64,000 nt of DNA from Epiperipatus broadwayi (taxonomy: Eukaryota > Animalia > Onychophora). Where the stretch lies: NCBI GenBank assembly GCA_028023455.1, contig JAQFVV010000001.1, forward strand, positions 7,812,001 through 7,876,000, written 5' to 3'. Made by a program: the position numbers and the translations under genes. The notes under the pieces were generated by a model. It ran no database searches. It was given only the letters and a program-made list of their open reading frames with translations, and was not told the origin of the DNA. Below are positions 47,211 through 64,000 of the stretch, one piece after another (position 1 is the stretch's first letter; every line of letters starts with the position of its first letter).

Positions 47211-49330
47211 TGTAACCGTGAACCTCTATATATACCCCGAGATTACGGGCTTCGAAATAAACATGACATAGCGTAAGGCTTTATTTTTTTTCTTACATCG
47301 ACAGTTATTCACGATCCACATAAGGGGGCGCCAGATACGATTATTTAAGTTGATTTTAACTACTCGCATCACCTTACATCATGTCAAAACGATTTCGAAG
47401 TCTAATCCCACCCACTAGCTCAAAACTCTCAGCATGGACCAATAAGGTGTCTCAAGGTTGTTACATGATTGTTTCTAGAATGACTCCTCCCGGAGAAGAC
47501 GCGTTGTCCGCTAATGAAGATCAGCAAGGTTTTCTAATAAGTCGATCACGGCATAAAGATTATTTATTGGTTATCACTGACCTATGAGGTTGTTCGCTTA
47601 CGCCCGAACACAAGGCTTACAAGTTCATCCCCCCGCTTTATTGTATATAACATAATTTATTGACGTTTACTTTGATTATAGACCCGCCCGCTCTTAAATC
47701 TATCTTAACTAAGGTGAAATAAGAAACATCGTGACTTACGGCACGATGGTGACATAATTAATAAAATAACTAAATGAAAATTAAAATTAACTAAATCTAC
47801 TTCAAAGATAAGTTATCAAAGCATAAATAAATTACGGTTTCGATTGTGTGTGAAAAGATTTGAGATATGCTCGACTTGATTAGATATTGAACAAGTTTAT
47901 TAAATATGAAAAGAAAACATTATTAATTGATTTATTACAAAACATTATTAATTGATTTATTACAAAACATTATTAATTGATTTATTACACACGCGCACAT
48001 ACATTCACGCCCACAGAGAACCATAAGTATTCATGACACAATTTGAATAACGAGAAAGTTCCTTTCTATTTGATAAATATATAATCTTTCCTTAGCTTCA
48101 CTTAAGTTCAAAGTTCATGTTTACAAAGTTCAGTAATAAAGATAAACTATCATGACGAGGAAAGTCTTAAGATTTATTTGAGTAAATTTATGTTGGTTAA
48201 TTACGAGATTGCCTTAAGAGTTTATTAATTGAGTGAGTGAACAGAATGAAAAAAAAACATAATTACCTAGGATTTGTCTTGGTTGCAACGAAGGTCGATT
48301 GGTCTGGACGAGTTTGGGTGTTTTACGGAACATTTCTTTTATGAGGAGCATTCACTTAACGCGACGATGTTATCAGAATTTCATAGCTTCGGAGATATTT
48401 CAGTAGCGGAGCGCCGATCAGTCACTGAAGGGTTTATTAGCCCCTCATGACGGTCGACGCTCTTGGTATTAATTTCATGATGATCATTTTAAATATTGAG
48501 GAATAACCAAGCTAATTCAGAACAATTCTAATTTTAAATAAAAGCATAAGCATCGGAATAAATGAGCCGGTGGTAATTCAGCGTACTGAGAATTGGAAAA
48601 TAAAAAAAACACAATAATGAGAATGTATCACTCGAAATGAATCGAATCGACTGAATCCAACCAATTCTTTCCAAAATTAAACATTGAATAGGTTTTGACT
48701 AGTATTTATAAAGGTTGATCCATATCTTGGGATCCAATCTACCCCCATAGTTCCCTGTTCTTGGAGTTGTCGTTCAGGTCCGCGTTTGAGGTACCTGCTC
48801 ACTCACTCTTTGTGCTAAAGGCAATATTTATTTTGGGACAATCTCATTTTGCAATCTCACTCAACCAACCTTATTCCTTCACACCTCGAAGGCATGCGTG
48901 TGTGCGTGTGTTTTACTAGAACAATACAAGTTATTTTACATTTAGAAGTCGAGCATTTATCTTTTCCTCAAATCTTTTCTATAAGTTTTATTCTAGTTAA
49001 AATTATATTTCTAAAATAAACATTTTTTAATTCCCGTGGTGATTTTGATTGATAATTATTTTTATTATTTTAGGAGTGCATATTATATTTTATTATTTAG
49101 GAAAGCAAATTATTTTTTGTTATTATTTTTATTATCTAAAGGCTTTAATCATTTAATTAGACGTTTTACCGTCTGCATTTTATCAATGTGTTTTATAAAT
49201 GTATTTATGAGAGAAAGAAAACTATTACTAATTACGAAAATAAAGTTACGAGTGTTTTATGTTGCTTGCTGGTGTGTGTGTTTATCGATGTATCCTAGAT
49301 TTAATATTGATGTAACGCTGTCTCGTTACA
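47211..49330 (-). mobile_element. 2120-bp solo-LTR-like element nested in the 5' LTR
   Basis: ATAT (47207-47210)|TGTAAC...GTTACA|ATAT (49331-49334). The site is empty in the 3' LTR. On the minus strand: TATAAATA 48710-48703, donor CCTAG|GTAATT at 48266, AATAAA 47285-47280. Confidence 0.78.
47914..47988 (+). repeat. Perfect 25-bp tandem repeat x3
   Basis: AAAACATTATTAATTGATTTATTAC three times. Confidence 0.95.
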
Positions 49331-51107
49331 ATATATATAATTAAAGTATTGGTTTAGGTTTATGTATCATTATATATATTCACAATAATTAAACAGGTAT
49401 GAACTACACGTATTATAAAATGGATGGGGTTGGTCTGTGTATATAATTTTTACCTCCCACACATAAAGAAAGCTAAATATTAAAGCTAAAATCTGTAATT
49501 TTATGCATATGAATGTATTATATATGGGTGTAATATTTTTTATTTTATTGCTTTTTACATAAATGCAAATGTCTCACATTTGTAATTTTATTCTTAAATT
49601 TGTTTACGTGTTGGGACAAGTTATAAAGAAAAAAAAAAAGAAGAAGATAAAATGATTGAAAGTAACTATAAATGTTCCAATGTGTCGATATTTTATTTTT
49701 AATTTTTATCAGTTATTTTCTCTACTAATGCTTTAAGCAAAGTCAGGTGGCCATTGTCTTACCAAATGTTAAAACGCACTAATGTATTAATGGCCACTCT
49801 GCTTTGTATTTTTATTTTTACAAACATAAGAGTTCGAGGAAATTGGATGCCAATACTTGCAGAGAAAAATCTGATTTATTTGTTGGATTGGTATTTTTTT
49901 TAGTTTCAAGCCTTTGTAATAAAAAGTTGCCTTTGAATTCAAATTTTAAATTGATGTGTATCAGTTAAAGTGATCTCGGATAACCTAGGATAAATATTAG
50001 AGATAAAAATTCTTTAGAGATGTAATAGGGATAATAATAGAAAAATGTAAAAAAAAATTATGTGCATTGTCTGAATCCATTAGCCATTAAGATAAAAGTT
50101 GGCTGACACAATAGTTCCACGATTTATAATGTAATGAGTGGGCTATATAAACTGTTCACTAGATGCCGGGAAAAACTTGATACCCTATTCTGTCGTCATG
50201 GTCTTTCATCACTCCCAAAGTTTTACTTTCAAGCGAATGATACTCATCAATATTATGATTCTCTTGTATTAATATACTTAGCACTTTGATAGTTGTTGCT
50301 GTGGTCATCACAGAATTAGAGGCTGCCAAAATCTTGCGGTGCTATAACACGATACTGTCATTAGTCTGATAATTACCAGCTATTTGCTGCTGAGGCCATA
50401 TATCCTGGCTGCAATTGCTGATTGTATAATCCTATACAAATTAAAAAGGGTACAAATCCAGACTGAGTCTCCAGTAAAAGTCCCTTCTAGTTAATCTAAT
50501 AAATAGCAGTTTTATTGATACTGTCATAGCAAGGAAAGTATTGGATACAAAATTCAAGATGAAGAAAACATATATCGGTTAGCGAGATGGTTATGGGATA
50601 AAAGACCGCTCCTGTGCACCCGTCCAGCTCCATCCCAACCATTAACATGTAGTCGACTAAGATCCAGCTAAGGATGATGATCAAGATTGCCATTGTCAGA
50701 CTAATGCCTTGTTGAAGTGAAGTCCCTACCACCTGCTGATCAGATGTATAGCATATACAGACATCCCAAATCCGGATGAAGTCTGAAGACACTGGAAGAT
50801 ATAATTTTTTTTATTTATTTAATATTTGTTTGTTTTCAATAAAATTTATGTTCTTTATACAACTCATAAAAATCAATTATATTGATACAGAGATTTTATT
50901 TCTTGGTTTAGTACATATAGGTTAGATCATTAATCTGCCAAGTCCAGGTGTGTTTTTTTCATGCTAGACATTTATTCACATTAAGCTAAAGATATATGTA
51001 CATTATACAGACACGTATGTTGTATCATATTTTTCTCATCTTTATATTATACATATGCGTATAGATTCAAGAAAGATGAAATGCATTAAAATAATTTTAC
51101 TTTATAT

Positions 51108-54100
51108 TGTAACAGAATAAGTATATGCCTACATTTCTTTCAAATAAATGTGGAAAAATATATATAATTACCCTCAGGTAGAAATATATATAAAAAAAGA
51201 AAATTTAATAATTTTATTTAAATTAATATATATAATGCACAGATGGCAAACTAATTATATAAAGTTTAAAATCTAAAAACAAGATTGTTTTAATATAAAA
51301 AAATAATAATAAAAAAAGCTGCTAATTAGTTATTTTAATCTTAGAATGGAAATGATTTTCTATATTGACATAATAGCAAGCAGGTCCTTAGGCATAGTCA
51401 GATAAAAGATAAATTAAAAAAAAAAATTAGAGATAAAATTTTGAGTTCACACTCTAAAGAAAACTGACCAATAACAATAGACATAAACACACAGTCCGCA
51501 GAGAAAAGTCATCAGAACAGCACCAAGCCAGGCAAGATTGATCCTGGAATTTGATAAGACTTTACAAACATATAAAAAGTAAACTTTGAAGTTGAGATTT
51601 AGATTGGGATTCCTCTTGATGATTATTTAAATATATTTATAAGTGTATTGTGGATCACCAAAATGTAGGGATCAGAAATAATTTACGTTTGCCATGTTTG
51701 CACCAGCTGAGGCAATCTCCAGAGTATGATGGTTCCCAAAAACTGGCCAGCAACGGATTTGTCCCCACCTAGAACAATATGAAATGTAAAGAACTTTGAA
51801 TTGTGTGATGCATAAGGACTGCAAAGATAGACTTTACCTATAGCATTGGAAAGTATTAACTTTTGTTTTAAATGAAATATGAACATTAATTATATAATAC
51901 AAACTTTTCCAAGTATTTTAAATGCCACTTAACTTCTAAAAGAAATCTCTCTTATCTGACTAAAATTTTAATTTACATTTTTTTTATGTGTTTAATATTT
52001 CCATTCTTGTAAATTTCTTTTAAATTAATAATTTAGAAAGTAAGCGTAAGTGGCTGCATAGATTTGCAAGATTATGTTAGTTTAAGGTGTGCTAATTTTG
52101 GGCTAATTGTTTTGTAGTTAAATCAGTGTTAGTGGATAATGTATAGATGTTTTGTCAATGTAATCTGAGTAGGTATATTGGATACTTGCTCCCTTGTACT
52201 GCGTTAGCATAAAGATCGTAATACCCATCTGAACATATAGCACAAAAGTATAGCTCAATGGACATAGATATATTTCCTACACCATTGATTTTCTTACACT
52301 CTGGTTGGGACAGTAAATATTCACATTTACAGACAATTTTGTATATATATATATACTTAGAATAATTTCATTTTTTTGTATCACCAATTGAGCAGTGGAT
52401 TGTTCCTGCCTGTTGGTGGTTTATTAATGATCATGGGGAAGATGCTCATTCATTCCCACCATGATTCTTTCTTTCTCAAATGATATTATGGAACAGACAA
52501 ATTCCTGTTAGCATGATTGTTATGCTAATAATCTCATTTTGTATTAACCACTTTGGTATACCAGTAAGCTACCGTTCATTTAAATGTGAGATTTTAGCCT
52601 AAGGTTAAAAGGAATTGGATTGGTTATATGCATAATCTATGTAGCATATTCATGCTTAGTAAAATATTGATATGGTAAAATCTATTAAATGCTTCCATCT
52701 GTGCATATAATTCAAATCAAACATATTCACTAGTTAATTTAATAATCAGAATTTTCCTTTTAATGTGTGTGCATAATAATAATAAAATGTTTTGTTTAAT
52801 TAAATTTTGGCAGTAATTTGTTTTATTAATATTTAAAATTAAGAATTAATTTGAATATACAATGTGATATTTTAAGCTGTTTCTCCCTGAGCTAGTGACT
52901 GGGGCTTTCGGTTCAATAAAAGAGTAACCTCTCCCGTGCGTATCTGCCTATTATAAAACTTTTCCAGGTTCAAATGGCTTGGTGGTGCTTGTACAGCAGA
53001 TTAGGTTAGGAAGGTTCTGTCAACCATTACCTCCACCATGGTTGTGTTGAAAACATTATTTCTAAAGATTTTTTTTTTTTAGTAATTATACACCCAAAAA
53101 ATTTAAGACTATTTTCCCCAGCTTTTTACATCAGCTGAGAATGCACCTCCCATTAAACAGTTCCCAACTTACTTCCTTTTTTTCTTTATTAGTCAGACTT
53201 TCCTAAAATTACTTTGTTAATATTATATTTTATAAGTTTCCTTTCTCACATGTATGCGTATGCATGCAATTTACTTTCTGGCAGTACTTTTACATCTGCA
53301 TTTAAAAAAAATTTTTTTTTGTTACTGACATAATTTTCTTCTGAAATTCTCAGGGTACTCTTGGTTAAAGGGTATCGCACATGTTGGGCACCAATTATAA
53401 TGATTGACAGAACCTCCCTAACCTAATCTGTCAAGCCACCAGGATATTTGAACCTGGAAAATTTATATAGTAAGCAGATACGCACGGGAGATGTTACTCT
53501 TTTATTGAACTGAAATCCCTAATCACTAGCTCAGGGAGAAACAGCTTAAAATAGCACATTGTATATTCAGATTAATTCTTAATTTTAAATATTAATAAAA
53601 TAAATTGCTGCCAAAATTTAAACAAAAATTTTATTATTACGCACACACACATTAAAAGGAAAATTCTGAAAATTAAATTAACTAGTGAATATGTTTGATT
53701 TGAATTATATGCACAGATGGAAGCATTTAATAGATTTTACCATTTTCAAGCTTGAATATGTAACATAGATTATGCATATAACAAATCCAATCCCCTTTAA
53801 CCTTAGGCTAAAATTTTGTGTTAAAAACCAATGCTAGCTGACTGATATACCGATGTGATCAATGCAAAATGAGATTATTCGCATAACACAACCATGCTAA
53901 GAGGAATTTATGTCTGTAGCATGTCATTTAAGAAATAAAGAATCATAGTAGTAAGGAATGAGCAACTTCCCCATGATCATTAATCAACCTCACCCAACAT
54001 GCAGGAACAATCCACTGCCCAATTGGTGATACAAAAACAAAATTATTCAAAAAATATATGAAATGCTCTGTAATGGGGATAGCGGTCTTTGCTGGCTTAC

Positions 54101-55295
54101 TGTTCCAAAGAGAATAAGAAAATCAATGACCATTAACAAAGTGATGGCTATACTTTTGGGCCTTATGTTTAAGTGGGTATTATGTCCTGTATGCTAACAT
54201 GGTACAAGGGAACGAGTATTCAATGTTCCTATTCAGATTACATTGACATAAAACATCCGTACATCCATCAGCACTGATTTAACTACGAAACAATTAGCCC
54301 AAAATTAATACAGCTTAAACTAACACAATCCTGTGAATCTATGCTGCCATTTACGCTTATTTTTAAATTATTAATTTGAAAGAAATTTACGAGAATGGAA
54401 ATGATATTAAACACATAAAAAATATATATAAATTAAAAATTTTAGTCAGATAAAAGAGATTTCTTTTAGAAGTTAAGTGATACTTAAAATACTTGGAAAA
54501 GTTTGTATTATATAATTAATGTTCATATTTCATTTAAAACAAGTTTATACTTTCCACTGCTGTAAGTAAAGTCCGTCTTTGCAGTCCTTGATGCAGCACA
54601 CAATTCAAAGTTCTTTCCATTTCATATTGTTTTAGATGGAGACAAGTCCCTTGCTGGCCAGTTTCTGGGAACCATCACACTCTGGAGACCGTCTCTGCTG
54701 GCGCACACACAAAAAATGTAAATTATTGCTGACACTTACATTTTGGTGATCTGCAATATTTATAAAATATATTTAAATAATCCACAACAGCAATCCCAAT
54801 CTAAATCTCAACTTCAAAGTTTTCTTTTTATATCTTCGTGAATTCTTATCATCAAATTCTAGGATCAATCTTGCCCGGCTTGGTGCGGTTCTTATGACTT
54901 TTCTCTATGGACCATGTGTTTATTTCCATTGTTATTGGTCAGTTTTCTTTAGAGCGTGAACTCAAAATTTTATCATTAATATTTTTTTTATCTTTTATCT
55001 GACTTTATGCCCAAGGACCTGTTTGCTATTATGTCAATATAGAACATCATTTCCATTCTAAGATTAAAATAACTAATTAATAGCTTTTATTATTATTCTT
55101 TTATATTAAAATAATCTTTTTAGATTTTAAACTTTAAATAATTATATAATTAGTTTGCCATCTGTGTATTATATATATTAATTTAAATAAAATGATCAAA
55201 TTCTCTTTTTATATATTTCTATCTGAGGATGATTATATATTTTTTTTCCACTTTTATTTGAAAGAAATGTAACGGCTTATACTTTTTCCGTTACA
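51108..55295. mobile_element. 4188-bp insert of two inverted ~1.9-kb LTR-like arms (51108-53030 and 53396-55295) with a 365-bp spacer
   Basis: ATAT|TGTAAC...GTTACA|ATAT. The homologous site in the 3' LTR (62450-62453) is empty. Arms align as reverse complements along their length (~80-90% by eye). tRNA-Lys-like PBS 2 nt behind the right arm. Confidence 0.9.
53377..53393 (-). promoter_or_regulatory. tRNA-Lys-like PBS behind the right arm
   Basis: Minus strand ...CATTATA-AT-TGGTGCCCAACATGTGC; 12 of the first 14 nt match TGGCGCCCAACGTG, both mismatches at CpG. Confidence 0.7.
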
Positions 55296-56084
55296 ATATC
55301 TATATGTGCTTGAAGCGTATATTAGCGCATATCTATAAAATATTAAATAGCAAAATGGATATACATATGGACATACATGTACTACTAGATTTTCATTGAC
55401 ATTATGTGAACTAATATAATGCCTAATATATATGTGACGATAAAGAACTCAGATCACTTCATTCAAAGACATTTTAAGGAATTAAGGAGGGTAGGAAGTT
55501 AGAGAATATATTTTCTTTATTGATACTTGTAGAATTGGTGATGGGTTATGTGGGGGTCATTATTATTTATTCGTTTACTTTTAAAATTATTTGTGGTATA
55601 TTATATATTCCTGAAAGCAGCTTGATCCACATAAAATAACCAGAGATAAAGAGAAGACTGAACTTAGTCTAATGGGATATTGCTTTATGAAGGTTAAATA
55701 TTTAATGTCATGCGAATATCTATTGTCCTCTAAATTGGTTATATAATTGGTGTAGCGGCTTATCCTTTTGGAAGGGGATTTTCTTTCTGAGAGTGGCATG
55801 TAAAAGCCAGGTTTAAATAGTCTTTCAAAGGCATGCACTGAACCAACACTTTGATATCCGTCAATATGGCAATGAAGTTTTAACAAGGAAGAACAGAATA
55901 ACTAGCGAGTGTTCAATCTCTTGCTCAATTAACAATCCAGTCAGATGATTTTAAAAAGTATGAAGTACATATTTCTAATGGAATTGTTATCAATGCCTTA
56001 CTCTGATGCATAATATTTATTTCATGTTCAATATGCACACATGGAAAGGACCCAGGTTGAGGCTTGCTTGGTAAAAAAGAAATT

Positions 56085-56102
56085 TGGTGCCCAATGTGGG
56101 GC
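56085..56102 (+). promoter_or_regulatory. Primer-binding site, tRNA-Lys(CUU)
   Basis: TGGTGCCCAATGTGGGGC versus the tRNA-Lys(CUU) 3'-end complement TGGCGCCCAACGTGGGGC: 16/18, both mismatches CpG>TpG. Confidence 0.85.
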
Positions 56103-57485
56103 CTGATCCAATGGCAGTCAGCATAGAAAAATATGGCACCTAAACATAAGTAAATAAATAAAAAATGAAAAAACTCTCAAATGGGAAAAGGTTGTTTTGA
56201 AATTAAATTAAGACTTTAACATTGATTAAAAACATATAAGTAAATTGTTGGACCAAGAAATAAAATGTCCCCCATATATACAAACCACACATAAGAGTAA
56301 AATGGATGGAAGATCAAGAAGAGTGTTAGATCAATATTATTTGAGCTCAGATGAGATTTTGTTTAATAGTAGCATGTAGATCGAAAGTTTTGTTTAGATT
56401 TGTAGTGTTTCTTGATGCATAAAGTAAGCGTATGTAAAAATAAAAATAAAATAAACAGCTGGAGCAGTGTGGAAGGATAAACAGTGAGCAGAATAGGAAG
56501 GAGCTAGGTGCGTGGTGCACTGAATATTCAGATAGACAAATAAAGTAGTAATAAAATAGCTTCAAATCTTAGAGTTTCAAAAATACATGAATCATGAGTA
56601 TAATAATGTGGCACAGCAAATTAAGATTGTCCTAAATACAGGGTATTTTACATGTGAAGATCGCGTTCAAGAAAAATGGAGCAGGAACATATAAGTGAAA
56701 AGGATGACACTGAATGGAGAGGCAATGGAGGAAGCCTGCCTGAAAGACAGTAAAGCATAATATAAGCAGATAGCGAACCACAAAGTGAAGAAAAACCCAG
56801 AAGGAAAAATGAGTTTATTAACAATGATGGAAATTTTTTTTATTAAGTATGAAAACAGATATCACAACAGATAAGAGATGAAAGATAGGTCTGATGATTT
56901 GGCACAGAACATAGCAAAAGATATGTACTGAGGCTAAATAATCTGAAAACTGAAATATCACAAGAGATAGAAGCAAGACTTCAAAGTATGGTAGAAACTA
57001 AGCAGCAACTAATGAAAGAAAAGTATGAGGGCATGAGGAGAGAAATCAACCAAAAGAGTGAAGTAATAAAAAGTTGCAGCGGAAGAGGAAGTAGAAACTG
57101 GTAGCAGGAAATAAAATAGGTCTTCAACAGACAATCAGCAGGATTGAACAGATGGTGAACTATCAGTTGTTGAGGCCATTAAAGAGCAGAATGTGATAAT
57201 TGATAAAGTGGAGATCAGAGTGAATGAGTGTAAAAGAGAAGGCAAACAAAGCTCAGTCAAAATCAAGAGCAATGAATGAACTAAAATAACCAGGTATGTG
57301 AAAACAATAGGGGGATATAAGATAAGTAAAATTAATTGAGGGATGTAAAGTTCAGTGTGCTATGGGCGAGACAAGTCAGGAACAAAAAAGTTGTTAGCTA
57401 GGAAAAGAAAACAGTAGTTATGATGAGTCAAAGAAGAATAGGAGGGAAGGACCATTCCCTCAGTCTAACATCAATCAGTTCTTAA

Positions 57486-59284
57486 CACATTTTAAAAAAT
57501 TTTATTTTTATATTGGTTCACAAACTCTCAATTTTGAAATGTATAACCTAAAATTACAATTTCATAGACAGCTTCATCACATTCGTTATAAAATGCAGAA
57601 AAAAAAAAAAAAAATAACATGACCTACCTGAGTTACAGTTTGTTGGAGTAATGTGGCAAAAGGTGACAATTTCAGTTTCACTTTTTTACTAACCAACCTA
57701 TATGTTCAATTTTTGCAAGCAGTTGTTTTTCTAGGCCCTCTATGCGGGATATCTATTAGAAATGCAAGGTTTTAGTGTGGATCAAAAAAAAATAACAGTA
57801 ATAACTTTAGTAAAGTGTAAGTTATGGGGGTTAAAAATACTATATTATTGGAATATCATGGGAGAAAGGGCGAGCTAAATTATGCATTATTTCATAGGAG
57901 ACCATAATAGCAAAGTATGCTTCAAAGTAATTAAAAACTTATCTACAATGAAATGAATAAAAACATAGTAAATTCTAAGTTATGAGTGTAAAAAATAATT
58001 ACTATATCAATGAAATATCATGAGAGTGAGCTAAATTATGCATTATTTCATAGGAGACCATAATAGCAAAGTATGCTTCAAAGTAATTAAAAACTTATCC
58101 ACAATGAAATGAATAAAAATATAGTAAATTCTAAGTTATGAGTGTAAAAAATAATCACTATATTATTGGAATATCATGGGAGGGAGGGCGAGCTAAATTA
58201 TGCATTATTTCATAGGAGACCATAATAGCAAAGTACGCTTCAAAGTAATTAAAAACTTATCTACAATGAAATGAATAAAAACATAGTATGTGATGAAATA
58301 AATTAAAAATTTGTCTCTAAAATAAAATGAATAAAAACACAGTAAATTCTAAGTTATGGGTGTAAAAAATAATTACTATATTATTGAAATATCACGAGAG
58401 TGAGCTAAATTATGCATTATTTCACAGGAGACCATAATAGCAAAGTATGTTTCAATGTAATTAAAAACTTATCTACAATGAAATGAATAAAAACAGTAAA
58501 TAAAAAAAAAAAAATAACCCAAAGGAATTACAAGCAATTATTATATATCAGTGGGAGATGATGATGATGACTGTTGATTCAGCATTGTAAATTATTTAGA
58601 ATACCAAAAAATCGATCTCGGGTCATAACTCTAGCAAGTTAGCAAGTACCGGTTGATGCAAATATTCATTTTTAGACCAAATAAATTTTAGTTTTGATAT
58701 GCGTAATATAGTAAAAACATGAATAATCATACCAAAAAATGCATTCAACTCAGCGGGTGACAGACCAACCTACTTCGGTAATGCCTTCTACTCTTAAACA
58801 TACCTATTGCTTTCAGTGCAAATATATAATTTTGTATAAAAAATAAATGAAATAGATCAGCTTCAAATATATAATTTTGTATAAAAAATAAATAAAATAG
58901 ATCAGGAATTGAAAACTCATGGCTAATGGTGAAATATGACGAAACCTCAGAATCAAACGCAAACAAAAAAGACTTTGACAGAATCAATCAAAATTACATT
59001 CAGCGGCGAAAGAAGCCATTTGTGCGGTTATTTTGTTTATACATTGATAAAATCTAGAAAGATAAAAAAATTTATAAAATTTTAATAACGTACTTTACAA
59101 AAATTGCTATAAAAAATCTAATTTTCATCGCACAGAAAAAATTTTTAGACGTACAAAAAGATAGAAAAATGGTGGAGAGAAAGAAAAAAAAATGTAACTG
59201 TGACGTGTACGGTTTGCACACTATTGTGGTCGAAATTGCAAACTTTTTTTAATGTGGAAAAAAGCGGTTTTCAGTTCTAAAGGG
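57486..59284. mobile_element. 1.8-kb non-autonomous piggyBac-like insert at TTAA
   Basis: TTAA at 57482-57485 and 59285-59288; removing the insert restores the gag frame. Right end ...CTAAAGGG|TTAA is piggyBac-like; left end TTAA|CACATTTT does not form a clear TIR. No transposase seen. Confidence 0.6.
57835..58500 (+). repeat. ~160-bp tandem array, 4 units with A-B-A-B alternation
   Basis: GAGCTAAATTATGCATTATTT at 57872, 58028, 58190 and 58402. Confidence 0.92.
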
Positions 59285-60673
59285 TTAAATATCAGAGTAT
59301 TGGAGGGATAAATGGGGGAAGCTCCTTTAGAGTACCTAAACAGCTTGGAAAAATATTTCCGGATAAATCAAATGGTTGAAATAAGTAAAAATACCCATCG
59401 CTTGCAGTCATCTTCAAGGCGATGCACAGGCATGATGGGAACCCTTATTACACCACCCTGTAACATTTGAGGACTATAAAAATGCTCTCTGGAGCAAAGA
59501 CCACCTGGAAACATACTGTATCGAGTGATGTAGAAAAGATATAATGCAAGTGACAGCGAGCATTATTAAAAGTTCTTTGGGAGGCAGACGGCCAAGCTTA
59601 GAACAATAACTGCATGCCACATGTTGGAGGGTCAGATTAACAGGATAATCCACCATAATATGCCCTTTAGGATTGAGCAGATGCTACATACAGCTAGCAT
59701 AAATTCAATAGAAAAAAATGGTGGAATTATTAAATGGGGTGGATATGAGTCAGCAAGGCTGACCACCAGATAAATCTTGGGAGAATATAGGCATCAATGC
59801 TTTGAGCTGTAAAGAAAATAGTGGCCCATATGAATGCCTCCAGCGTATAAGGCCCAACCTAGAAGCCCCAGCCCAGTGCTAGATGACAACCCTACATGGA
59901 ATAGGATCAAGGACCTGCTATATAAAGGAAAGAGGGCCAGGCCATCTTCACCTAGGCCAGGGGTAGTAAAAGTCACAAGTAGATAATTATTTGAGTCAGA
60001 TGAGTACAAGGCTTGGAGGTTGGGTGCAAAGTGGTAATTTTCCAGGTGTTGTGTATGAGGGCATCTCAATATTTTTGGAACTTTAAGGTTGGAGATGGAT
60101 AGTGCAAGGATTAATGGGAGATCCTTATCTAATTTATAATCTCTGTGGCCCTAGGACAAAGTATATACTCCACAGGAAGATTGGAAATACTTTAACTGCA
60201 GGGATGAAGATTCCTCTGGGACTAATACCTTAAACGCAAAAGATCCTGTAAGCCTCAAATAAGGAACGAGCATGGGTGCATTTATTTAAGGTTGTATTTT
60301 TTTATATAGGGCTCTTGGTTAAAAAAAGCCCTTAGTCTTTCGATGCATAAGATCCTATAAAGCTCCAAATAAACAAGCATGCATGCATTGGTTAGATTTG
60401 TATTTTTACTTTGCATAGTTGTCATGAGATTGTAGATAAAGTAGGGGTCTCTAAGATGGTGTTCCATGTCTCTTTATTTCTAGCTCAGGGGCTGGAACAA
60501 TGATATGCTCTTGGCCTGGCATATCGATGCCTGGGGGCTGAAGGTTTGTACCTTAGGCTGTTATGTCAACAGTACTCTAATAAGTAAGACTAGGGAAAAA
60601 TCAAACATATGTCAGCAAAATATAGCGTATTAGTGAATACATTAAATGGCTGATCCTATTTGAATGTCTCATC

Positions 60674-60681
60674 GGAGGGGG
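60674..60681 (+). promoter_or_regulatory. Polypurine tract
   Basis: GGAGGGGG immediately before TAT|TGT, the start of the 3' LTR. Confidence 0.75.
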
Positions 60682-60684
60682 TAT

Positions 60685-63285
60685 TGTGCTGGGAACTCTT
60701 GGAGTGGCCACGCACAAGGTGGCTGTAGTCAAAGCTAGTTTTTATATATAATAAAAGTAATGGTTTAGGTTTACTTATCATTATATGTTTGCAATTAAAC
60801 AGGTACGAACTATAGATGTACTATAAAATGGATGGGGTTGGTCTGTGTATATAATTCTTACCCCCACACACTAAAATGTGTAATATTTTTTATTTTATTG
60901 CTTTTTATATAAATGCAAATGTCTCATATTTGTAATTTTATTCTTAATTAAGTGTTGGGAACCATAAAGAAAAAAAAAAGAAGATAAAATGATTGAAAAT
61001 AACTGTAAATGTTCCAACATTTCTATATTTTATTTTTAAATTTTTATCAGTTATTTTCTCTGCGACTGCATTAAGCAAAGTCAGGCTGCCATTGTTTTAC
61101 CAAATGGTAAAATGTACTAATGTATTAATGGTCACTCTGCTTTGTATTTTTATTTTTACAAACAAGAGTTCAAAGAAATCAGATGCCAATACTTGCAGTG
61201 AAAAATCAGATGTGTTGGATCGGTATTTGTATTTATTTTCAAACTTTTGTAATACAAAGTTGCCTTTGAATTCTAATTTAAATTGATGTGTATCAGGTAA
61301 AGTGATCTGAATTCACCTAAGATTAAAATTAGATAAAATTCTTTAAAGATGTAATACGCGATAATAATAGACAAATGTAAAAAAAAACTGTGCATTGTCT
61401 GAATCCAGTAGCCATTAAGTTAAAAGTTGGCTTCCAAGGGGGCTACCCAGACTCATAATGTAATGAGTGGGATCCAGATTCCTAATGTAATGAGTGGGCT
61501 ATTTAAGCTGTTCACAAGATGCCGGGAAAAACTCGATATGTTATTTTGTCATCGTGGTGGTCTCTCATCACTCTCAAAGTTTTACTTTTATGCTGATGTT
61601 ACTCATTAAGATTGATTCTCTCATATTAATATACTTAGTACTTTGATAGTTGTTGCTGTGGTCATTGTGAAAAATTAGAGGCTGCCAAAATCTTGCGGTG
61701 CTATGAGCCCGACGTTAATCTGATGAGTACCAGCTATATGCTGCTGAGGTCATATATCCTGGCTTTAATTAATAAGATGTTCACTGTATAATCCTAAACA
61801 AATTAAAAAGAAAGAGTACAAAGCCGAGCTGAGTCTCCAGTAAAAGACCCTTTTAGTTAATCTAATAAAGAGCAGTTTTATTGATACTGTCATAGCAAAG
61901 AAAGTATTGGATACAAAATTCAAGATGAAAAAAACATATTGGTTAACGGGATGGTTACGAGATAGAGGACTGCTCCAGTGCGCCTGTCCAGCTCTATACC
62001 ACCTGTTTACATGTAGTCGCCTAAGATCCAGCTAAGGATAATAAAAATCACCAGACCAACGCCTTGTTAAAGTGAAATCCCTTCTGCTCTGCTCAGATGT
62101 ATAGTGCACTCAGACACCTCAAGTCTGGATGAAGTCTGAAGATACCAAAGGGTATATTTTTCTTATTTGTTTGTTTTCAATAATATTTGTATGTTCTTTA
62201 TATAACTCGCAAAAATGAACTATATTGATAATTTTATTTCTTGGTTTAGAACATGTATGTCAGATCAGATATTTATCCACCATGAGCAGGAGTTTTTTTT
62301 TCCTGCTAGACATCCTTTCACGTTAAGCTCAAGATATATGTACAGTATACAGACACATGTGCATGTTCTATCATATTTTTCTCATCTTTAAATTATACAT
62401 ATGTGTATAGATGCAAGAAAGATTAAACGCAATAAAATAATTTTACTTTGTATCTGTGTGCTTGATGTATATATCAGCGCATGTCTATAACATATTATTA
62501 AAGTGGAATGGAGGTACATATGGACATAGATGTACTACTAGATTTTTCTTGACATGCGAACTAATATAACAACTAAAATATACGTGTGTGGGTATAGAAC
62601 TTAGATCACTTCAAAGATATTTTAATGAATTAGGGCAGGGATTTTCCCCAAGTAAATGGCTCTGCATATTATGAAGAGGGCAGGAGGTTAGAGAATGTAT
62701 TTTCTTTATTGATATTTGTAAAATTGGTGATGGATTATGTGGGGGCTAATAAATATTTATTTATTTATTTTTAAAATTATTTGTAGCGTGTTTTATTTAT
62801 TTTATCCTCCCAATGATTAAAAGAATTATATATTTCCGAAAGCAGCTTGATCCACATAAAATAACCTGAGATAAAGAGAAGACTGAGCTTAGCCTAATGG
62901 TATACTACTTTATTGAGAGTTGAACATTTAATATCATGCAGATATCTATTTTCCATTATATGTGTCACATAATTGGTTGGTAGCAGCATATCCTTTTGGG
63001 AGAGGATTTTCTCTTTCTGGGAGTGGTGCGTAAAGACCAGTTTTAAATAGTCTTTCAAAGTTATGCAGTGGCCAATATTTTGACATCCGTTGGCATGGTA
63101 ATGAAGTTTTAACAAGGGAGGGATTACAATAACCAGCTATAGTTCAATCTCTTGCTCAATTAACAATCAAGTCAGGTGATTTAAAAAAATATGAAATACA
63201 TATTTCTAATGGAATTGTTATCGATGCCTTACTTTGATGCACAACATTTATTTCATGTTCAATATGTACACATGGAAGGGATCCA
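60685..63285 (+). repeat. 3' LTR (uninterrupted reference copy, ~2.6 kb)
   Basis: Begins TGT 3 nt after the PPT; homology with the 5' LTR ends at CATGGAA.GGA.CCA. Confidence 0.85.
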
Positions 63286-63487
63286 TAGTTTGGAAAATTG
63301 CAAGATGGAAAATGTGTGTAGCCAAATGAACAATAATGCTCTACATCTAATGAGAATGTAATTTAAAAATGCCATTATTAAAGTGAATCATTATGCATGG
63401 CTCTACTATATTTAAAAATTCTACCTGTGTCACTGTATTTTTCATACACTTATCTTGAATGACAAGTACACAATGATATTTTATATA

Positions 63488-64000
63488 CACATGGATCTCG
63501 TTTTATGGGGTAGATAGGTTCTACAAAACACGCATAAAAGAAATCGCACAAAAATAGACTTAACTTACATTGAAAAATGTGGGATATGTTCCATAATTTT
63601 CGAAAATCGCATAAAAGCAAAGCAACAAGGTAAAATTACTTTAAAATTCGCATAAAAAAAATAAGGAAATAAAGTATGACTAATAAAAAATTGATACAAG
63701 ATAAACTTTTTTTACTAACTATTTAATTTTATTCAAAACAATATGTTTTTATGTCTAATTTATTTTACATTTTTTCAAACATATTTCAATCATTATCGCT
63801 ATTTGACAATATGGGGATATGTTTGAAAACTGATAAGAAATCACATTCGTCACAAGAGGAAATACAATTAGCGCCATCTTCAGTCTTGTGCTGCGTTTAA
63901 TAAGTGCATCAATTGAAAATTTTGGTTCATGGCTTCAAGTCGCTCTAAAAATATCATTATTGTAGAAAATTGACAGTCTTTTTTAAAATGTACCGTAAGG
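63488..64000 (+). mobile_element. Left end of a pogo/Tigger-like (Tc1-mariner) element, runs off the window
   Basis: TA|CACATGGATCTCGTTTTATGGGGTAGATAGGTTC...CGCATAAAAGAAATCGC resembles Tigger/MER2-type termini; CpG-rich promoter-like segment with GCGCCATCTT. Second end not in the window. Confidence 0.5.

Follow-up and report, generated by a model that had tools for sequence, protein, structure and literature searches.

Inverted long terminal repeats in a 4.2-kb unit of Epiperipatus broadwayi: a probable aberrant copy from an abundant non-autonomous retrotransposon family

The question raised by this locus is whether a 4.2-kb unit with two inverted long terminal repeats (LTRs) belongs to a new kind of mobile element or is an accident within an ordinary one. 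The unit lies at positions 51108-55295 of a 64,000-nucleotide stretch of the genome of the onychophoran Epiperipatus broadwayi (assembly GCA_028023455.1, contig JAQFVV010000001.1, forward-strand positions 7,812,001 to 7,876,000); the whole stretch is referred to as the window, and positions are those of the window. A sequence-only reading of the window had offered three origins: (a) a non-autonomous family that presents two U3 ends and may be moved as DNA, (b) a miniature LTR element whose 3' LTR flipped at its own boundaries, and (c) two opposite insertions at one ATAT hotspot followed by deletion. The unit is a rare copying accident in a direct-repeat family and not a new kind of mobile element. 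It is probably one aberrant member of a non-autonomous LTR family with many copies, in which an accident of reverse transcription reversed the second LTR before integration.

Structure of the unit and its insertion into a host LTR

The two arms of about 1.9 kb (51108-53029 and 53396-55295) are inverted relative to each other, as found by a repeat search and by a global alignment with 1609 matches, 243 mismatches and 30 gap openings (86.9% identity; Kimura two-parameter distance, K2P, 0.146). The outer termini of the unit are TGTAAC on the left and GTTACA on the right. The sense strand of the element is the minus strand, on which an LTR ending in CATTATA is followed by AT, TGGTGCCCAACATGTGCG, about 340 nt, TGGTGGAGG, and the 3' end of an LTR in reverse complement. 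The normal 5' LTR of the element (minus strand, TGTAAC...CATTATA, 53396-55295) was assigned from alignments and from the tree described below. It is followed on the same strand by the AT (53394-53395) that is conserved in canonical copies of the family, by the 18-nt primer binding site TGGTGCCCAACATGTGCG (53376-53393), recognized from its sequence and its alignment to canonical copies, and by a non-coding internal region (53039-53375) homologous to the internal region of about 450 bp of the family. The internal region in the window lacks the last ~60 bp of the family version, polypurine tract included, and also an internal stretch of ~40 nt. Its homology to canonical copies stops at ...TTTTCAACACAACCA, ~60 bp ahead of the expected start of the 3' LTR, and nine unrelated bases follow before the reversed LTR begins. 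Aligned to canonical copies, these nine bases (TGGTGGAGG on the sense strand; 53030-53038, minus strand) are without counterpart and distinct from the family polypurine tract; they constitute a junction filler. When the primer site is reverse-complemented, the filler agrees with it at 7 of 10 positions, which would suit a reversed arm that had brought part of this site along; the likeness was rejected as too weak. The inverted LTR (51108-53029) lies on the plus strand, with its U3 start (TGTAAC) outermost and its inner end, CCATTA, 2 nt short of the ...TTATA end of the family. The spacer between the arms measures ~370 nt, and a single open reading frame (ORF) of at least 60 amino acids (67 amino acids) was found in 51108-55295; an Rfam scan of positions 49000-64000 of the window at E ≤ 0.1 gave no match. 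The sequence-only reading had described the inverted arms, their TGTAAC outer ends and the minus-strand order correctly, and its view of the arms as LTRs of a miniature non-autonomous element with a tRNA-Lys-type primer site is supported. The GGTGGAG that it took for a short polypurine-like tract is part of the junction filler, the polypurine tract of the family being missing from this copy.

The unit interrupts a 5' LTR that belongs to a larger host element, non-coding and on the plus strand. By alignment to the host 3' LTR (60743-63286, plus strand), the host 5' LTR consists of a part left of the insertion (49331-51103) and a part right of it (55300-56084), and the unit is bounded by ATAT on both sides (51104-51107 and 55296-55299). 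Homology between the host LTRs extends up to ...TTTACTTT(A/G)TAT and resumes right after one copy of the tetranucleotide; at 62450-62453 the 3' LTR has GTAT only once, homology being unbroken on either side, and provides a clean empty site. One clean insertion of the 4.2-kb unit into the host LTR, with a 4-bp target-site duplication (TSD), is supported, and what had been read from the sequence about the ATAT flanks, the empty site at 62450 and a precise single insertion is borne out. As had also been expected of a single event, the arms are not more divergent than the host LTRs (K2P 0.158; bootstrap difference, arm minus host, -0.012, 95% confidence interval -0.038 to +0.015), as is expected of arms that were identical at the time of insertion into a host already in place.

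Palindromic chimeras do occur in long-read assemblies, and an assembly artefact of this kind (a palindromic chimeric read or a collapsed repeat) was considered for the unit. The arms differ by 14%, with 30 indels, and a palindromic-read artefact is therefore impossible. Short-read unitigs at single-copy depth (~30x, as in unique flanks) span 52961-53170 and bridge the junction between inverted arm and spacer; the four short-read runs behind them come from one sample, probably the one that was assembled. The left outer junction, ATAT followed by TGTAACAG, is also present on an allelic 5-kb contig (C4523) at 98.6% identity. The chance that the arrangement is an artefact of assembly is negligible. 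The allelic contig (L065, C4523:1-1500) differs from the window by two insertions. One of ~205 bp sits exactly at the left outer junction and has a duplicated CTTTACTTTATAT-like flank, and the other of ~450 bp lies within the arm and translates into a C-terminal tail of a reverse transcriptase resembling those of long interspersed nuclear elements. Both look like retroelements that arrived after the inverted unit and are polymorphic among the haplotypes.

A family with direct LTRs

In a first look at the 5.6-Gb, AT-rich assembly the arm gave 5256 matches and the spacer 558, 40 of the latter being scored. The best 28 arm loci are mostly solo copies bounded by TGTAAY...GTTATA and flanked by 4-bp duplications such as ATAT, ATAG or ATAC, or by one-mismatch versions of these; among 4-bp targets the family favours ATAT. 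The loci sampled with the spacer comprise 29 other than the window. It has an LTR on both sides in direct orientation at 18 of these, and at 9 a single LTR lies within reach, in canonical position and orientation; one locus is complex (L035), and one has the inverted layout of the window (L025, identical with L040, on C6476). In the canonical element a 1.9-kb LTR is followed by AT and a tRNA-Lys-type primer site, then by a non-coding stretch of ~450 bp, a polypurine tract and a direct LTR; its internal region ends in the purine-rich GAGGAAG..GGTGATA, adjoining the TGTAAC of the 3' LTR. The closest spacer relatives of the window among the loci sampled (L037, L038 and L044; 86-88% identity) are all canonical, L038 and L044 with both LTRs direct and L037 one-sided. 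Across the window arms and about 30 other copies, the LTR termini TGTAAY and GTTA(C/T)A form a short inverted repeat. The family is an abundant, ordinary non-autonomous LTR retrotransposon, intermediate in size between TRIM (terminal-repeat retrotransposons in miniature) and LARD (large retrotransposon derivatives) elements; Ty3/Gypsy and BEL/Pao are its candidate superfamilies. The expectation attached to the sequence-only reading, that an accident would leave all relatives direct or solo, holds for most spacer copies, which are direct or one-sided; the arrangement itself is not unique, as 1 of the 29 loci is inverted.

Three internal regions of the family (L035, L037 and L046) lie within 10 kb at C201:1420388-1430406, which is a nested or rearranged cluster. 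At L035 a reversed LTR segment (~positions 1042-1863) stands just ahead of the last 8 nt of the 5' LTR. Two candidates for further inverted units were rejected. The two opposite LTRs at L006, separated by 950 bp, have no primer site and are each flanked by ATAT of their own, and they are independent solo LTRs; at C6205:13441604-13442030 the supposed partner is merely a 66-nt fragment behind a TA repeat.

The primer site TGGTGCCCAACATGTGCG begins 2 nt past the LTR end and is conserved across the aligned copies. We take it to be the 18-mer complementary to the 3' end of tRNA-Lys(CUU), altered by CpG decay. The CpG-intact 16-mer occurs 1137 times in the genome, compared with 0 occurrences of the reversed control. 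In both loci inspected (L062, C1:21731927-21734942; L063, C1:24078388-24081403) it adjoins the end of another LTR, these primer sites standing next to different LTRs; an example of its context is ...GGTTACA TT TGGCGCC.... The same tRNA appears to serve many LTR families of this genome. With ARAGORN, no tRNA was detected in the window or at the two loci with the CpG-intact 16-mer, and no tRNA-Lys gene was recovered. With regard to an autonomous partner, L062 contains an ORF of 185 amino acids without a Pfam match, and its LTR is unrelated to the arm.

The host element has its own Lys-type primer site at ~56085-56102, ~28 nt past the end of clear LTR homology. Its 4.6-kb core (56085-60742) contains a 156/212-bp tandem array at 57839-58495 and no ORF of at least 80 amino acids on the sense strand; because of the latter the host is likewise non-autonomous, and it is LARD-like. 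A 20-bp mini-palindrome, TGTAACGCTGTCTCGTTACA, at 49311-49330 abuts the start of the host 5' LTR, ATAT following, and has the same end motifs as the arm LTR family. A comparable 26-bp palindrome, TGTAACG...CGTTACA, was seen in the flank of L018. Both may be what extreme deletion has left of LTR copies, or of units with two U3 ends.

The arm family shares with TRIM and LARD elements the absence of coding sequence, a primer site, a purine-rich tract, direct LTRs, TG..CA ends, 4-bp TSDs and numerous solo copies, and with LTRs of 1.9 kb and a core of 0.45 kb its size falls between the two. The window copy itself has TG...CA-type termini, a primer site, a fixed 4-bp TSD and no gag-pol coding capacity, and it lacks the polypurine tract before the 3' LTR (lost with the ~60-bp region) as well as direct LTRs, which the family does have (both LTRs direct at the 18 loci above). 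Since direct LTRs are the norm, the family is a member of the LTR retrotransposons and the window copy an aberrant derivative. DIRS elements also have inverted terminal repeats; however, they are characterized by a tyrosine recombinase, an internal complementary region and the absence of TSDs and tRNA primer sites, whereas the window unit has a 4-bp TSD with an empty site, a tRNA primer site, relatives with direct LTRs and no coding capacity. Penelope-like elements and retrozymes have pseudo-LTRs, direct or inverted, with hammerhead ribozymes. Affiliation to them is likewise not indicated, as the primer site and the 4-bp TSD are present and the Rfam scan of 49000-64000 gave no match. Primer site and TSD together point to insertion of the integrase type.

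Recurrence of the inverted form and relationship of the arms

The second inverted unit, L025, shows the same layout with both U3 ends outward and is flanked by ATAT on both outer sides. It keeps ~15 nt more of the internal sequence than the window copy (...AAGTAAATTCTTTT), and its reversed LTR is joined ~100 nt inside the LTR 3' end, at a duplicated ATTCTTTT, TCTTTT being common to both partners. With an arm K2P of 0.097 versus 0.146, L025 is younger than the window copy. Deletion cannot turn either copy into the other. Queries spanning the inverted junctions of the window and of L025 matched at full length only themselves in the whole genome; one such query otherwise returned mostly plain LTR ends, so that it tests the uniqueness of the junction and gives no census. 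As neither copy derives from the other and the junctions are unique, the inverted form was made at least twice and never copied. L009 (C105) is a possible third unit with outward U3 ends. It consists of a full LTR, AT, the first 2 nt of the primer site and a reversed LTR running from ~position 918 to the U3 start, and has CTAT on both outer sides.

To examine how the arms are related, 53 of them were placed in a maximum-likelihood tree based on 920 columns that they share, canonical LTR pairs being compared over those columns only. The arms of the window are sisters (support 99/91), as are those of L025 (100/97). Canonical control pairs were recovered as sisters in 4 of 5 cases (L042, L043, L053 and L057). 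The arms of L009 were not recovered as sisters, and their sisterhood was not rejected (approximately unbiased (AU) test, p = 0.16). The window pair and the L025 pair fall into different major clades, nested among direct-LTR and solo copies, and a second tree from the first 874 columns gave the same result. The remaining control, L047 (C12593:735630-739019), is a canonical direct-LTR copy with non-sister LTRs and may be a recombinant of two elements or a mixed-template product.

These relationships bear on two of the alternatives. Two independent insertions in opposite orientation at one ATAT hotspot, followed by deletion of the sequence between them, would be in keeping with the strong preference of the family for ATAT-like targets and with the existence of unrelated neighbours that face each other in opposite directions, such as those at L006. 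However, the arms are sisters in a family of thousands of copies, and the same holds for L025; the second insertion would have to strike the same 4 bp and the deletion to stop no more than 2 nt from an LTR end; and, by the evidence of the host empty site, a single ATAT was duplicated. This origin, option (c) above, is disfavoured also by the independent reappearance of the architecture, and is considered very unlikely.

A true inverted-repeat mobile form would be a distinct non-autonomous family, either moved as DNA by cut-and-paste in the manner of Ginger or replicated as such. Ginger DNA transposons, whose DDE transposase derives from an integrase, have TGT..ACA ends and produce 4-bp duplications. 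The window unit correspondingly has two termini of the same type (TGTAAC...GTTACA) and a 4-bp duplication, as a DDE enzyme needs, and the architecture was found at least twice. However, short terminal inverted repeats are a family trait in Ginger, whereas the inverted form in the window is a by-product of a family of retroelements and a singleton. In 5.6 Gb there is one occurrence of each inverted junction, specific to its copy; the window and L025 differ in junction and in clade, and the relatives are direct-LTR or solo copies, the closest by spacer being canonical. With 18 of the 29 spacer loci sampled direct and 9 one-sided and canonical, option (a), a family that presents two U3 ends, did not hold, and a mobile form of this kind is regarded as extremely improbable.

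Besides these units, L019 (C6202:11731063-11735962, ~1395-1504) comprises a full LTR whose 3' end meets, head-on, two reversed pieces of itself, one of ~110 nt and one of 34 nt (..CAACCATT meeting CAACAGAACC..). On the far side there is no U3 end, and no duplication was seen; the structure looks like a snap-back extension of the U5 end.

Origin of the reversed LTR

The insertion as a single unit, the sister arms, the two U3 termini and the variable junctions, with filler in one case and microhomology in the other, are consistent with DNA that had this shape before it was integrated. A rearrangement after insertion would begin with a direct-LTR copy at ATAT, altered later by an inversion with a precise deletion or by a template switch during chromosomal replication. 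Sister arms and a matching duplication are likewise expected of a normal insertion, and long repeats favour replication errors. However, a plain inversion would place the ~60-bp segment preceding the LTR between the U3 start and the flank, and TGTAAC abuts ATAT directly. A simple in-place inversion is thereby excluded. Option (b), the flip of a 3' LTR at its own boundaries, fails on the same segment, which includes the polypurine tract and is missing at the inner junction and absent at the outer end too. Another deletion, precise to the nucleotide at both of its breakpoints, would be needed, and the same pair of events would have to be assumed again in L025 and perhaps in L009. A rearrangement in place is an unlikely origin of the unit.

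Retroviral autointegration can put a reversed LTR beside internal sequence, and the resulting inverted circles are known from classical retrovirus work. For the window unit, a processed U5 end would have attacked the internal region ~60 bp upstream of the 3' LTR, and the two U3 ends, facing each other across ~60 bp in the resulting inversion circle, would then have been inserted by integrase. This topology gives precisely the observed order (first the 5' LTR and the primer site, next the internal region as far as the break, then the reversed LTR from its U5 end), and the inner end of the inverted LTR is within 2 nt of the normal processed end. However, that inner end reads CCATTA followed by CC and not the processed ...TTATA, so that two substitutions or a 2-nt loss are needed. 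A joined end cannot account for a reversed LTR that lacks ~100 nt (L025) or ~1000 nt (L009) of its end; variable and non-terminal junctions of this sort misfit the process. Autointegration products are, moreover, circles and normally dead ends, and a circle with ~64 bp between its ends is hypothetical as a substrate for integration. Autointegration is accordingly held to be improbable.

An accident of reverse transcription remains the favoured origin, and could have proceeded as follows. A plus strand comprising U3-R-U5, primer site and internal region would stop ~60 nt before the polypurine tract during plus-strand synthesis. The stalled strand would then switch to, or anneal 3' end to 3' end with, a second plus-strand strong-stop LTR DNA. 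The reversed arm of the window is a complete U3-R-U5, and no RNA template contains a complete LTR; the arm must therefore have been copied from plus-sense LTR DNA. Extension of each strand on the other would yield a blunt linear duplex whose two termini are both U3 ends (TGTAAC...). Integrase would process and join the two U3 ends with the usual 4-bp duplication, which it could do because the LTR termini (TGTAAC / GTTAYA) are short inverted repeats, so that two U3 ends resemble a U3/U5 pair. A product without a polypurine tract and without a correctly oriented 3' R-U5 could not be reverse transcribed further; the integrated unit would never be copied again and would decay in place. Such a dead end fits the unique junctions. 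End-joining of broken cDNAs is a further variant, which cannot be separated from template switching.

Several points weigh against this account. The window junction contains a 9-nt filler and not a clean microhomology. The arms of L009 were not recovered as sisters (AU p = 0.16), and an empty site is known for the window only, not for L025 or L009. ATAT is the favourite target of the family, so that matching ATAT flanks are by themselves weak evidence, and it is the empty site that carries the argument for the window. The census covers only ~58 loci of a family with thousands of copies. The template switch is a step that we infer from its products, no intermediate being observable, and the joining of two U3 ends by integrase in vivo is deduced from the symmetry of the termini together with general knowledge of retroviral integrases.

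Three-LTR retrotransposon complexes arise by template switching in reverse transcription, are flanked by TSDs and have near-identical outer LTRs (Sabot and Schulman 2007, PMC1950507). Like the window unit, they are products of one round of aberrant cDNA synthesis integrated whole, with TSDs and with outer LTRs that are closest to each other. They differ in being tandem and direct (LTR, core, LTR, core, LTR), whereas the window unit has a reversed LTR, has lost the polypurine tract and ends in U3 on both sides. Defective HIV-1 proviruses with inversions or asymmetric LTRs are also described, inversions making up ~1-3% of the integrated proviruses sequenced (PMC9278108). They too are integrated errors of reverse transcription, at ~1-3% there versus ~1 in 29 spacer loci here. 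The HIV-1 cases are internal inversions and LTR deletions in somatic proviruses and are not known to include a whole LTR reversed with U3 at both termini, as in the window, where the copy is a non-coding germline fossil. The literature searched, in which older subscription work is thinly covered, yielded no description of a reversed LTR together with a TSD in any LTR retrotransposon copy.

The inverted units stop at different points, 2 nt into the primer site in L009 and after ~340-390 nt of internal sequence in the window and L025. A more tentative proposal, given somewhat less than an even chance, is that they form a fossil series of a recurrent accident, in which plus strands of differing length were joined to a reversed LTR and integrated via two U3 ends. 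If this were true genome-wide, the series would constitute in vivo evidence that the integrase of an LTR element readily accepts U3/U3 substrates, and a natural record of the positions at which plus strands stall.

The analysis removes a tempting lead, in that there is no new class of inverted-LTR mobile element at this locus. At least two, perhaps three, inverted-LTR cDNAs arose independently and were inserted with normal TSDs. The accident type recurs in the arm family at low frequency. This implies that the integrase of the family can join two U3 ends in vivo, and that inverted products of faulty reverse transcription enter the germline at a measurable rate, which in this small sample is ~1 in 29 loci with the spacer. 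LTR-finding software that relies on direct repeats would miss or mis-split such copies. Inverted repeats of 1.9 kb are also a potential source of hairpin RNA and of local instability, and it is a possibility that transcripts running from the intact through the reversed LTR form long hairpins and thereby supply a small-RNA silencing of the family.

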